From positions 124,001-188,000 of the forward strand of contig NW_026948167.1 of NCBI RefSeq assembly GCF_963921235.1: DNA of 64,000 bases, in the 5' to 3' direction. Both the position numbers and the translations under genes were made by a program. The notes beneath the pieces are model-generated. The model saw only the letters and a program-made list of their open reading frames with translations, did no database searches and had not been told where the DNA came from. Source of the stretch: Mobula hypostoma (taxonomy: Eukaryota). Positions 1-64,000 of this stretch are shown here, in pieces. Each line of letters opens with the position of its first letter. The first letter of the stretch is position 1.

Positions 1-2109
1 AAGACGCTAAGAAGAAAAGTTGCGACAGAAATGCATGTGGGTGATTTTTGTGCAGTTAGAAATGCTGGTTTGTCATGCTGTGAATTTTCAGGCGAGGTTA
101 ACAATTGGGATTCGATTAGGTAATTAGGAATTCTTTATGTATATATTGTTGCGATATTTTAATGTTGACACGCCGGGCTTATTCAGCCGTTTTAGCCTTT
201 GAACGCGGGCTCGAAAAGAGCGTTCTCAGATACGGACGGGATACTGCAATTTCTAGATTTGGAAAGAGAAAGAAAGAGGGAGGTTAGAAGAAGAAGCTGT
301 GGATAGGAGGGTTGGCGAATAGAGAACGGCGAAGAGGGGGAAAAAGAGGACTAACAGAGAGAGAGAAAAGAGCAGAAGACTGTGTGTGTGTGTGTGTGTG
401 TGTGTGTGTGCGTACGAGAGAGAGTGCACGAGAGGGAGAGAGAGGTGGAGAGACTGTTAGAGAGTGAGCAGAGGGGTAGAGAGGTGAGATAGAAATGGGT
501 GATGCAGGGGGAGAGATGTAGATGGGGAGACAAAGAGAGGGAGCCGAACGGGAGAGTGAGGATATCGGTGGAGAAAAAACAGAGGGAGAGGGAGTCACTG
601 ACACTCAGCGATATGGAGAGAGGGAGGGAGGGGAAGACATGATGGTGGAAGAGAGGTTAGAGAGAAGAAGGGATGGAAGGTGAGAAATAGAGTGAGAGAG
701 GGGTGGGTCTGACAGCTAGAGGGTCTCGGAAGACAAAATGAAGACAGGGGTTGGTGAAAGGGAGATAGATAGAGAGAAAATTACTGTGTGAGCGCGCGAG
801 AGAGAGAATGAGAGGAAAAAATCACTGCTAGGGAGGGAAATAGAGAAATTTACTGGGAGGTAGATAGATAGTTTAAAAAGATAGGTAAGATAGGTAGATA
901 GAAAGAAAGAAAATAGATAGATAGACAGAAAGAAAATAGATAATAGGTAATAAATAGATGTAGGTAAATTATAGATAATAACTAGAAAGATAGTCGTTTA
1001 AAGAAAGAGAGAGACTTACTGAGAGACTGAAGGGAGATTGTGATTTGCCAGGAGAGAGAGAGAGGGACAGATATGGAGATTATTAGATAGATAGATAGAT
1101 AGATAGATAGGTAGATAGATAGACAAATTGATTGTTTAGATAGATAGTTCGGTAGATAGAGGTGCATGTATAGATAGATGGATAGATAGATAGACAGACA
1201 GAGAAACTAGAAGAGAGGGAGGAAATAGAGTTAGAAGCAGATAGATAGAGATGGAGATAGGGAGAGAGAAGGAGAGAGAGGGAGAGGGAGATGGAGAGAG
1301 CTAGACAGAGAGAGAGGGAGATGGTGTGTGTGTGTGTGTGTGTGTGTGTGTGTTTGGGGGGGGTGTTGAAATGTCACCAGCAATTATTCAAAATGAATGT
1401 CTCTTGTCTCTGAACGCCAGCCCATTAAATTCTCCTGACCCCCCGGACCCGCCTCTTGACGTCTCCTTACGCCAATTCGGCAAGGGCTCCTCCTTTCACA
1501 CTGCTGCTTAAATCTAACATGTAAAAAGCCACCGACAATCTCGCCTGAGCGCCGAAACGCTAAAGAATTTACCTTGTGGAGAATCGCGCACGGTCCCTCA
1601 CGTCAAGGTGCGCAAAACTCGACTTTAGAGGTAGGGATTTTTTGACACAGAGAGAGAGAGCGAGAGAGAAAGAGATTATCTAAAAAATATAAATTGGGTC
1701 TGTCGGGTGGGAGAATAGGCGCTTATTTTTAAAAGTTGGCTGTCTTCTATGATGGGGGAGTGGTGGAGAGAGAGTGCGCCTGTATATCCTCTCCCCCCCC
1801 CCCCCGTATCTGTTTATATCTCTCTACTGTACGCGAACTTATATAATGTGTGTGATTGTGCATCTGTGTGCATGTGTGCACGAGCATATGTTTGAGTGGC
1901 TAGGTGTGTGTGTGTGTGTGTGTGTGTGTGTGTGTGTGTGTGTGTGTGTGTCTGTGTGTCTGTGTGTCTGTGTCTCTGTCTGTGTGCCCGTACGTGCGTG
2001 CGGTTTAGATATGTGGTTGTGTCTGTCTGTGTGCGTCTGATTGTGTCTAAGCATACCTGCGTTTGTATGGTGAGCTTGTGTGAATGTGTTTTTGTTTGTG
2101 TATGTGTGT

Positions 2110-2390
2110 GTGTGGGATTGTGTGTCCGGCTGTGGAGTACAATATCTGTGTTTATCCGATTGACTATCCGGGTGGGGGTACAGAACCTGTGTGTGTAGGG
2201 TTGGGTGTTGGAGTGGGAGGTACAGCATCCCCGTGTGTTGGGGGTTGTGTATCTGGGTGTGGGGTACAGTATTTGTGCATGTGGGATTTTGTGTCCGGAT
2301 GTGGGGTACAGTGTGTATGTGGGCTTGTGTTTCCGGGTATGCGATATAGTACCTGCGTGCGTGGGATTGTGTGTCCGGATGTGGAAGGGG
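2110..2390. repeat. Degenerate ~40-45 bp minisatellite, about 7 units
   Basis: Recurring GGGATT(G/T)TGTGTCCGGATGTGGGGTACAG-like unit. Confidence 0.7.
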
Positions 2391-2719
2391 GTAGGGAGAG
2401 CTGTTTGTCCGTGTGCGTGCGCGCGCGGAGAGGGTTATGCTCTTGTCCTGTCAGTGTTCCGCCTCCGCAGCGCAGCAACCTTTTTTCAGGTAAATATTTC
2501 AGTTCCTCTACGGCTCAATGGTACCACCACCCTTGTACCTACCCCTTCCCACTCCCACCCCGTCAACACCCGAGCTGGTGGAGTACGGACGCGGCCGGGA
2601 TGGTGAGTTGAAAAAGGAAATGTGTTTTGTTTTTGTCGTCCTCCTAAGACTGCGCTCACCTCTTATCCCCTCCCCCCCAACTAACTCCCCGCCCCCTCAC
2701 CACCACCCCCCTCTAGTTT

Positions 2720-61143: not shown

Positions 61144-61522
61144 CTGTAGACGGTGGAGAGGTGATGGGGCGGATGTGGATTGCATGGACTAACTCCACCA
61201 GAGCAGGTGGGGAGTGTTCCATCATACTCATGACTTGTAAACGGTGGAGAGGTAATGTGGTGGATGTGGAGTACATGGCCGAACTCCATCTGGGCTGTGG
61301 GGAGTGTTCCATCACACTCCTGACCTGAAGAAGGTGGAGGGGTAATGTGGTAGATGTGGAGTACATGGACTAACTCCACCTGGGCAAGTGGGGAGTGTTC
61401 CATCTCACTCCAGACCTGTAGACGGTGGAGAGGTAATGTGGTGGATGTGGAGTACATGGACTAACTCAAACTGGGCAAGTGGGTAGTGTTCCATCACACT
61501 CCTGACCTGTAGACGGTGGAGG
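61144..61522. repeat. 91 bp minisatellite, 4 full units plus a partial unit
   Basis: Unit starts at 61144, 61235, 61325, 61416 and 61507. Consensus CTGTAGACGGTGGAGAGGTAATGTGGTGGATGTGGAGTACATGGACTAACTCCACCTGGGCAAGTGGGGAGTGTTCCATCACACTCCTGAC. Confidence 0.93.
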
Positions 61523-61849
61523 GACCTTGATGCTGTTTAGTCGATTGGTTGTTATTATCGGTTTTCTAGTTGTTTAATATGATTTGTATATGGAATTTTA
61601 TATGAAATTATTATTATTATTATTATTAGTTCAGTTGACAGCAAGTTGATTGGCATGAACATAGAGCTAAAGGGTTTGCTTTCATGTTCAACTCTGTAAC
61701 GTTCCTGTGGATGGGTACGTGATTGTGCGTGGAGACTTCTGTACTTCACCAATAAACCCAATTCTGTAACATCATCCCCAGTACCTTGTAGTTTAGTTTG
61801 ACATATTAATTTTCATTCCCACTTCTCTCCTCATGTACCACCAAGGTCA

Positions 61850-64000
61850 ATTTTCTACCCCACTGTTATCAGACTATTAATGATGAATGTTGACTTCTTG
61901 AGGCAGTGCCTCCTGTAGATATTACTGATGGCGGGGAGGGATGTATCACTGATGTGTTGTGCTAAACCCATTATTCTGTGCAGCTTTTTATGGCTTGATA
62001 TGGTAACTACTCTGCCCGAGACTGCCAGGAACTGCAGAGAGTTGTGCACACAGCTCAGCATCTTCTCCATGGACTGGGTCTACATTTCTCACTGCCTCAG
62101 TAAAGCAGCCTGCATAATCAAAGACCTCACCCATACTAGACATTCTCTCTTCTCTACCCTCTCCATTGGACAGAAGACACAAAATCCTGAAAGCACACAC
62201 CACCAGGCTCTATCCCACTGTTATAAGATTATTAAATGGTCCCCTAGTATGATAAGATGGACTCTTGACCTCACAATCTACTTCATTTTGACCCTTTCTT
62301 CTTATTGTCCACCTGCACTGCACTTTCTCTGCAACTGTAACATTTCATTCTGTTTTGTTTTACGCAATTACTAAATTGATGTACTGATGCGATGAACTGA
62401 TATGAATGGGTGACAAGCAAAACAACATTTTTCACTGTCCCTCAGTACACCTGACAATAATCAAACAACTTACCAGCTGGGAGACACGAAAGAGACAGCA
62501 GATTCTAGAAATCTAGAGCAATACACATGAAATACTGAAGGAACTCAGTATCCGTGGAGGCAAATTGACAGTCAATGTCTTGGGCTGAGACACTTCATCA
62601 GGACCGGAAAGGAAGATGCCAGTATAAAAAGAGTGGAACAAGTTCAAGGTCTGTAGTTCAAAGTAAATTTATTATGTGTATGCTACCATATATTACCTCG
62701 AGATTCATTTTCTGGTAGGTATGTACAGGAAAATGAAGAAATACAATAGAATTTATGAAAAAACTACACATAAACCAAGACTTAGAGCAACCAGTGTGAA
62801 AAAGGAGCCAACTGTACAATAAAAATAAAAATACTGAGAGCATGAGTTGTAAAGAATCCCTGAAAGGGAGTCTATGGGTTGTAGAATCAGTTCAGAGTTG
62901 TGGTGAGTGAAGTTATAAGGCCAGTTCAGAGCCAGTCCACACTGGTTCAGGAGCCTGATGGTGCATGGTAATAACTGTTCCTGAACTTGGTGGTGCTGGA
63001 CCTAAGGTTCTGCAGCTCCTGCCCAATGCTACTAGTGAGAAGCAGGCATGCCCCAGATGGTGGAGGTCTTTGATGATGGATGCTGCTTTCTTGTGACAGT
63101 GCTCCTTGTAAATGTACTCAGTGGTGGGAGAGTTTTGCATGTTATAAACTGGGCTGTATCCACCACTTCCTGTAGACTTTTCTGTTCCTGGCCATAGGTG
63201 TTCTCATACCAGATCAGGATACTCTCCACTGTGCATTTATAGTGGTTTGTCAAAGAGCTGGAGGATGGAAGGTGGATCCAGGAGGGGGAGGGAGAGAATA
63301 GGAGTGATGTAAAAAACTGGGAGGTGATGTGTTATTTAGCAATGTAATATTTACAGCACAGAACTTCACAGCAAAGGAGCAGGCTCTTCATTCTACAATG
63401 TTGCTCCACATTAATTAAACACCTATCTGAACTAATCTCTTCTGCCTACACAACGTCAATATCCCTCCATTCCCTGTGCATTCATCAGTCTGTCTAACAA
63501 CCTCTTAAGCATCTCTGTCATATTAATGCTGGTTAATGTAAAACAGTAAGAAAAGGTTTTCTGAGATTTCAAGCACACCACAGCAATGTCAAGTTTATTG
63601 TCACACACACAAATACAAATGTGCAGAGGTGCAGTGAAAAACTTACTTGCAGCAACATCACAGGCAGAGAGCATCAGAAACACAACATTCACAAGAAAAA
63701 ACATAAAACACAATTTTTACAATTCGTTTCCTGACTGGTTGCATTATGGGCTGGTATGGCAATTTGAATGGGCATGTAACAAATGCAACTGTAACGAAAA
63801 CCAATTTCCCCCGGGATCAATAAAGTATGACTATGACTATGACTATGAACATAATAAGCTGCAGAGAATAGTGGACTCTGTCCAATACATCATGGGTCCA
63901 TCTCTCCCCACCATCAGTAGTGTCTACAGGAGGTGCTGCCTCAAGAAGGCAATGTCCAAATTATGAGGGATATAGATAGAGTAAATGCAAGCAGGCTTTT
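61850..64000. mobile_element. Nest of LINE fragments on both strands
   Basis: Repeated RT C-terminal motifs LPAISNIYRRHCLKK (-), CLSKAACIIKDLTHTRHSLFS (+), LQEVVDTAQFIT..HCHKKAASIIKDLHH (-) and KLQRIVDSVQYIMGPSLPTISSVYRRCCLKKA (+). CR1 pieces at ~63345-63530 and 63960-64000. Confidence 0.85.

Follow-up and report, generated by a model that had tools for sequence, protein, structure and literature searches.

Hox clusters are the textbook example of a genomic region held compact and free of transposons by regulatory constraint. Squamate Hox clusters have accumulated transposons, so that repeat exclusion there is loosened while the genes are still functional; all four squamate clusters are affected, mainly by interspersed elements, unlike the single cluster and the simple repeats that concern us here. 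We analyzed a stretch of 64,000 nucleotides from the lesser devil ray Mobula hypostoma (contig NW_026948167.1, positions 124,001-188,000; the whole stretch is hereafter the window), which is the HoxC9-HoxC8-HoxC6 portion of the HoxC cluster of this species. Previous work has described elasmobranch HoxC as repeat-invaded, GC-rich and fast-evolving, and has placed it within the pseudoautosomal region (PAR) (PMC10620051; bioRxiv 10.1101/2025.03.13.642935). The PAR carries more low-complexity repeats and has a higher GC content, both of which were ascribed to accelerated recombination (PMC10620051), and the HoxC cluster is common to the PARs of five sharks and rays (bioRxiv 10.1101/2025.03.13.642935). 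In the lesser devil ray, hox-c6, c8, c9, c10, c11a and c12 were located on an unlocalised scaffold of X1 (bioRxiv 10.1101/2025.02.26.637739). A 2026 paper reported that HoxC clusters in elasmobranchs frequently exceed 100 kb by far and are repeat-invaded, spoke of a "relaxation of structural constraint", and noted that rays keep Hoxc9 (PMC13097845).

The described system closest to the devil-ray locus is the HoxC cluster in Hemitrygon akajei, the red stingray, for which "extensive repetitive element invasion" was reported and which was said to be released from strong structural constraint (bioRxiv 10.1101/2025.06.08.657570). Both species belong to the Myliobatiformes, have kept HoxC and carry it on X1 (Squalomix preprint 10.1101/2025.06.08.657570). 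In the stingray cluster, likewise, long intervals separate the genes, repeat coverage is high and GC content exceeds that of HoxA and HoxD, and its genes are transcribed (10.1101/2025.06.08.657570). The two differ in gene content, since C3, C6, C9, C11 and C12 are reported for the stingray while the devil ray also has C8, which lies in our window, and C10 (10.1101/2025.02.26.637739). They also differ in how repeats were counted: the stingray figures are library-based and cover the whole cluster, whereas ours refer to tandem and low-complexity DNA plus recognisable tails of long interspersed nuclear elements (LINEs) over 64 kb. Related cases are the HoxC clusters of the zebra shark, bamboo shark, catshark and whale shark (PMC10620051). 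The zebra shark cluster extends over 180 kb and holds just c6 (partial), c8, c11 and c12, and c9 is missing from most sharks (PMC10620051). Ray genes are also less divergent than those of sharks: Mobula HoxC8 exon 1 is 91% identical to HoxC8 of the electric ray Narcine and 71% identical to HoxC8a of the chimaera Callorhinchus milii (the elephant shark), whereas its identity to C8 fragments of sharks is only 53-59%. Callorhinchus shares with Mobula the C10-C9-C8 order and strand, the two-exon genes and a conserved island in the C9-C8 spacer. Its HoxC locus is, however, shorter, with a C9 intron of 1,365 bp (2,133 bp in Mobula), a C8 intron of 400 bp (about 1,389 bp) and a C9-C8 spacer of 6,951 bp (12,679 bp).

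Compared with the canonical compact gnathostome Hox cluster, which is nearly repeat-free and has spacers of a few kilobases, the devil-ray window is repeat-rich and stretched. We consider it likely, at a probability of about 0.8, that devil-ray HoxC has left the compact, repeat-poor state with its genes kept, and that a recombination-hot sex-chromosome setting, which we infer, is the most likely mechanism. One script was run on all loci fetched around Hox9 and Hox8 genes and returned the coverage of Tandem Repeats Finder (TRF), the number of perfect microsatellites per kilobase and the share of low-entropy DNA. Low-entropy DNA made up 26.5% and TRF arrays 6.3% of the readable bases of the window, which contained 96 perfect microsatellites (1.48 per kb), against 1.1%, 0.04% and none in block-shuffled copies of it; a sequence-only reading of the window, which had called it a repeat-rich Hox cluster, was correct in this respect. 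The other elasmobranch HoxC loci were richer still in tandem repeats: Narcine HoxC9 (TRF 11.7%, 1.48 microsatellites per kb, low-entropy 30.4%), Narcine HoxC8 (11.0%, 2.65, 30.7%), HoxC9 of the sawfish Pristis pectinata (23.2%, 3.22, 44.5%) and HoxC9 of the basal shark Heptranchias (32.6%, 2.41, 44.6%). In contrast, the script returned 1.7%, 0.42 and 4.0% for Narcine HoxD9, and 0%, 0 and 2.7% for Heptranchias HoxD9, so that within one species low-entropy DNA stood at 30% in HoxC versus 4% in HoxD (Narcine) and at 45% versus 3% (Heptranchias). Callorhinchus HoxC was also cleaner than that of Mobula, with 1.4%, 0.54 and 9.6% for HoxC9 and 1.6%, 0.66 and 10.2% for HoxC8. By the same script, the simple-repeat load was thus 3-10 times that of compact clusters, and the repeat excess is specific to HoxC among the loci measured. 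Because rays and a basal shark share it and a chimaera lacks it, the excess looks like an old elasmobranch trait. The sequence-only reading had described a breakdown of repeat exclusion; the loss of exclusion held, but transposons are not the main part of the excess, which is chiefly made up of microsatellites and low-complexity DNA.

As a separate observation, tandem-repeat coverage in the devil ray was the lowest of the four elasmobranch HoxC loci measured (6.3% vs 11-33%). Speculatively, repeats may have been gained more slowly, or have decayed, if the region ceased to be pseudoautosomal after the X1 fusion.

Substitution in the coding exons pointed to a fast region with constrained proteins. 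The ratio of nonsynonymous to synonymous substitution (dN/dS) was 0.05-0.15 in all HoxC9 and HoxC8 comparisons and 0.10 in HoxD9. Between Narcine and Heptranchias, C9 had a dN of 0.21 and a proportion of synonymous differences (pS) of 0.73, which is saturated, and D9 a dN of 0.05 and a pS of 0.375, giving dN/dS of 0.08 and 0.10, respectively; over the first 84 codons pS was 0.84 in C8 and 0.11 in D8. The same pair of species was collinearly alignable over 52% of the HoxD9 locus and only 4% of the HoxC9 locus. The raised substitution rate that is a feature of repeat-invaded elasmobranch HoxC was therefore seen in both C9 and C8. GC content at third codon positions (GC3) was 0.72-0.77 in HoxC of Mobula, Pristis and Heptranchias and 0.48-0.50 in HoxD9. 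Taken together, these comparisons demonstrate that the structure of the cluster has loosened, yet selection on its proteins is not visibly weaker, and that the whole region is fast at silent sites. Relaxed constraint, as the sequence-only reading had put it, thus holds for structure (spacing and repeat load) and not for coding sequence. Since silent and non-coding divergence are raised several-fold, the mutational or recombinational environment explains much without loss of function, and saturated synonymous divergence with an unchanged dN/dS favours such an environment over loss of function. The mechanism we propose is that HoxC would lie in a GC-rich, recombination-hot part of an ancient elasmobranch sex chromosome that is, or formerly was, pseudoautosomal. 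In such a setting, simple repeats and fast substitution would arise from replication slippage, biased gene conversion and an increased mutation rate, and looser cluster-wide regulatory coupling may allow such changes, together with occasional transposon insertions, to persist.

A different explanation is plain relaxed selection, in which HoxC is becoming dispensable, repeats build up neutrally and the cluster is on a path to complete loss as in skates. HoxC is wholly absent in Rajiformes and has fewer genes in other elasmobranchs (bioRxiv 10.1101/2025.06.08.657570; 10.1101/2025.02.26.637739); most sharks have lost Hoxc9, whose role Hoxa9 is able to replace (PMC13097845). The protein identity between Mobula and Heptranchias points the same way: C9 reaches only 70%, whereas D9 and A9 reach 92% and 93%, respectively. 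Nevertheless, we regard this explanation as unlikely, because dN/dS of C9 and C8 is no higher than that of HoxD9, the three reading frames and their splice sites are intact, and rays retain the Foxp1-modulatory domain of Hoxc9 (PMC13097845). Moreover, the excess is mostly slippage-type DNA and not insertions, and in one small M. hypostoma sequencing run, guessed to be RNA, 95% of the words sampled from C9 exon 2 and its 3' untranslated region (UTR) (13075-13900) were present. A recombination-hot sex-chromosome environment fits these observations at least as well as functional decay does.

Non-coding conservation also speaks against decay. A conserved non-coding island in the C9-C8 spacer (17505-17734) was 77.6% identical to Narcine and 76% identical to Heptranchias by blastn chaining, and its nhmmer profile matched the C9-C8 spacer of the elephant shark (E = 2e-21), so that this enhancer-like element has been kept as far as chimaeras. 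The profile also weakly matched HoxD9-D8 spacers (E ~1e-6; 13219-13275 and 13507-13565 of two fetched HoxD9 loci), and this match to a paralogous spacer suggests that the element is older than the cluster duplications. We take its position and its homeodomain/Cdx-like core to fit the known Hoxc8 early enhancer. The sequence-only reading had proposed that small islands surviving among the repeats mark essential cis-elements; the conservation of 17505-17734 fits this idea, which may therefore be retained for at least one island. If some of the N runs are deliberately masked conserved DNA, more islands exist than were counted. A segment of about 150 bp is duplicated nearby (15276-15427 and 17458-17608; 78% identity), and its second copy adjoins the island.

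The distances within the window were exactly those given by the sequence-only reading: 12,679 bp from the C9 stop to the C8 start, 22,499 bp from the C8 stop to the C6 start, and 3,856 bp for the C6 intron. The C9 gene spans 2,874 bp and the C8 gene 2,142 bp. In the HoxD cluster of the same genome the intervals were 4,554 bp (D10-D9) and 6,536 bp (D9-D8) and the gene spans 1,370 bp (D9) and 949 bp (D8), and in HoxA the corresponding values were 7,635 bp (A10-A9), 7,689 bp (A9-A7) and 1,642 bp (A9 span). HoxC spacers and introns are therefore about 1.6-2.8 times those of HoxA and HoxD, a modest, roughly two-fold stretch. In Narcine and Heptranchias the C9-C8 spacer measured 11,401 bp and about 9.75 kb, respectively; that of Mobula is 1.8 times its elephant-shark counterpart of 6,951 bp. 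GC content, in a comparison that relies on proxy species, was 42.6% in the window versus 36.5-38.0% in the HoxD9 loci of two elasmobranchs and 39% in Callorhinchus HoxC. It could be argued that nothing in this is specific to HoxC and that devil-ray Hox clusters are stretched and repeat-rich throughout the genome. Red stingray HoxB is indeed also GC-rich and repeat-rich and lies on X1 alongside HoxC (bioRxiv 10.1101/2025.06.08.657570), so that a contrast of C with A, B and D together is not clean. We consider such a genome-wide stretch very unlikely: spacing is not equal across the clusters of this genome, HoxA and HoxD spacings and gene spans being about half of those in HoxC, tandem repeats are almost absent from HoxD9 loci in two other elasmobranchs, and stingray HoxA and HoxD are reported to be compact and gap-free (bioRxiv 10.1101/2025.06.08.657570).

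That the repeats and long spacers are an assembly artefact, produced by misjoined or mis-sized repetitive contigs in an unlocalised, gapped scaffold, is hardly credible: the window does contain six N runs per 64 kb, the region has been called hard to assemble (PMC10620051; bioRxiv 10.1101/2025.02.26.637739) and a sawfish assembly gap falls exactly within the sawfish C9-C8 spacer, but three independent assemblies agree with the window in gene order, in strand and in the collinear arrangement of many non-coding blocks, the gap-free C9-C8 spacers of Narcine (11.4 kb) and Heptranchias (9.75 kb) are similar in length, the C8-C6 spacer and HoxC6 intron are free of gaps, and gap-free long-read loci of other species are likewise enriched in repeats. 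The six N runs total 1,007 bp and none overlaps a coding exon. They include one upstream of HoxC9 (8876-9116), one in the C9-C8 spacer (15067-15200), two in the HoxC8 intron (27051-27193 and 27525-27706), so that the 1,389-bp length of that intron is merely an estimate, and one that begins 53 nt past the HoxC6 stop, within the presumed 3' UTR (55241-55375). On either side of the first four gaps the sequence runs collinearly with the HoxC loci of sawfish and/or electric ray, and in the HoxC8 intron collinearity with sawfish extends across both gaps; the order and orientation of the flanking pieces therefore look right. With respect to the sawfish, we rejected a 10.6-kb deletion that would have included the enhancer-like island, because a 100-N gap lies exactly there (14556-14655 of the fetched locus). 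The portion of the Mobula spacer without a sawfish counterpart is 13738-24324, and the same gap makes the 2.5 kb annotated between sawfish C9 and C8 unreliable. The sawfish HoxC9 orthologue is named "Hox-A9-like" by NCBI.

Several points weigh against our preferred reading, that devil-ray HoxC left the compact state with its genes kept, most likely in a recombination-hot sex-chromosome setting. GC3 is already 0.60-0.62 in Callorhinchus HoxC and is no higher in Narcine HoxC (0.58-0.59). Synonymous sites of HoxD may themselves be under selection, so that the contrast could overstate the mutational effect, and saturation of dS in HoxC makes dN/dS imprecise. The devil-ray Y yielded no HoxC genes (bioRxiv 10.1101/2025.02.26.637739), and the cluster may no longer be pseudoautosomal in devil rays. 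For Mobula HoxA and HoxD we had gene positions only, and the repeat contrast is drawn from other elasmobranchs and from published data for a stingray; in addition, interspersed repeats were recognised without a repeat library, so their count is incomplete.

The repeats of the window are of several kinds. TRF reported 46 dinucleotide arrays, 29 of them GT/AC and 15 GA/CT, and at least 10 arrays with a period of at least 10, among which are a 35-bp array with 5.9 copies, the GT-rich 42-bp minisatellite with 6.8 copies at 2105-2385 and the 91-bp minisatellite with 4.2 copies at 61137-61523. A degenerate AT-rich tandem array of about 1 kb, with units of 22-35 bp and a higher order of about 180 bp, occupies 43430-44491. 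By composition, a 3.5-kb stretch at 4501-8000 is pyrimidine-rich on the plus strand (68-76% C+T per kb). Purer tracts are a purine tract of at least 80% A+G on the plus strand at 34260-34785 and, of similar purity, a pyrimidine tract at 48914-49603, a purine tract at 55356-55887 and a pyrimidine tract at 56007-56506; tracts at least 80% pure reach 0.5-0.7 kb. Past the HoxC6 stop and its N run come two tracts of 0.5 kb each, first purine and then pyrimidine, the second of which ends a LINE tail. The sequence-only reading had counted dozens of (GT)n, (GA)n and (GATA)n runs, at least seven minisatellite-like blocks and kilobase-scale purine or pyrimidine tracts. The minisatellites and the GT and GA runs were borne out, but (GATA)n arrays number only about 5-7, and kilobase scale applies to the one 3.5-kb stretch and not to the tracts of high purity.

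Recognisable interspersed DNA, as far as it can be seen without a repeat library, was limited to about 10 LINE 3'-tail fragments, found by translated self-comparison, and about five copies of one short dispersed element; more than 20 fragments of short interspersed nuclear elements (SINEs) and LINEs, as the same reading had claimed, is plausible, against the about 15 interspersed fragments recognised. Simple repeats outweigh this interspersed DNA, which is a small share. Translated self-matches placed 4-5 CR1-like LINE 3'-tail fragments in a first zone (35561-39686), at 35561-35839 and 38116-38418 on the plus strand and at 38603-38871 and 39456-39686 on the minus strand. A second zone (58648-63963) holds fragments at 58648-58975, 62072-62371 and 63850-63963 on the plus strand and at 61858-62070 and 62916-63203 on the minus strand. 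A further LINE-tail-like fragment on the minus strand (8669-8875) adjoins the N run at 8876-9116. The CR1-like label follows the known C-terminal motif of CR1 ORF2; a search of the ESM Atlas with a LINE-tail open reading frame (ORF) matched only unnamed chordate clusters and was uninformative. We found no long transposon ORF in the window, and ARAGORN detected no tRNA-like SINE heads in it.

The three Hox genes were modelled from six-frame ORFs and splice sites. Each has two exons with open frames and GT/AG splice sites, and all lie on the plus strand in the order C9-C8-C6. HoxC9 (246 aa) consists of exon 1 at 10440-10941, from the ATG to the GT donor, and exon 2 at 13075-13313, with the homeobox and stop, separated by the 2,133-bp intron. 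HoxC8 (250 aa) has exon 1 at 25993-26425 and its homeobox-containing terminal exon at 27815-28134, and HoxC6 (232 aa) has exon 1 at 50634-51000 and its homeobox exon, ending with the stop, at 54857-55188. The spliced HoxC9 protein is identical to XP_062895327.1 (HoxC9-like, M. hypostoma), whose gene lies on a contig of 339,483 bp, and differs at two residues from that of Mobula birostris, which confirms the elasmobranch host; its exon 1 shares 99% identity with the HoxC9-like protein of M. birostris. The top database matches of HoxC9 and HoxC8 were HoxC9 and HoxC8 of rays, sharks and Callorhinchus, in agreement with HoxC orthology. The third gene is assigned as a putative Hox6 from its N-terminus, hexapeptide and homeodomain arm and from its place downstream of C8. 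BLASTP of its exon 1 against one protein named "C6a" gave no real match, and that protein itself looks C8-like. Searching the whole window by tblastn with the three Hox proteins revealed no further homeobox relics, and thus no C7, C5 or C4 remnant in it. Rfam found no mir-196, either at the gathering score across the window or at E up to 1 in 1-10,500, and no other Rfam family; the N run at 8876-9116 is unreadable within the mir-196 search zone (1-10439), and the microRNA may sit farther upstream towards C10.

In addition to the island at 17505-17734, other non-coding segments could be aligned between species. A unique block of 580 bp in the C9-C8 spacer (20630-21212) was collinear with the electric ray at 74.8% identity over 600 bp and had no match in the fetched shark or chimaera loci. 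Another short segment conserved with the electric ray, at 73% identity, lies at 36863-36967, 8.7 kb downstream of C8. Upstream of C9, chained non-simple blastn hits revealed long collinear similarity with sawfish. About 3.3 kb of the HoxC8 3' flank (28135-31447, plus strand) could be aligned with both sawfish and electric ray, and probably comprises a long 3' UTR plus conserved elements. The run guessed to be RNA contained 48% of the sampled words of this flank (28135-31000), and two sister runs of the same study contained none of either the C9 or the C8 words. This word content is suggestive of tissue-specific C9 and C8 transcripts.

The repeat invasion of elasmobranch HoxC and its escape from structural constraint have already been published, including for a myliobatiform stingray, and our window adds one species. 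An exception to the rule of compact, transposon-free Hox clusters is instructive, even if it has been documented in sharks and in that stingray. The points worth following are the mainly slippage-type nature of the excess and the saturated synonymous divergence with unchanged dN/dS, and the chimaera-shared island at 17505-17734 is a candidate minimal Hoxc8 enhancer. Tentatively, and at somewhat less than even odds, elasmobranch HoxC may look "degenerate" for largely mutational reasons, having long resided in a recombination-hot region of pseudoautosomal type, with a several-fold increase in slippage and neutral substitution but with selection on proteins and core enhancers as strong as in HoxD. 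If this is true, mobulid HoxC would be fully functional and not heading to loss.

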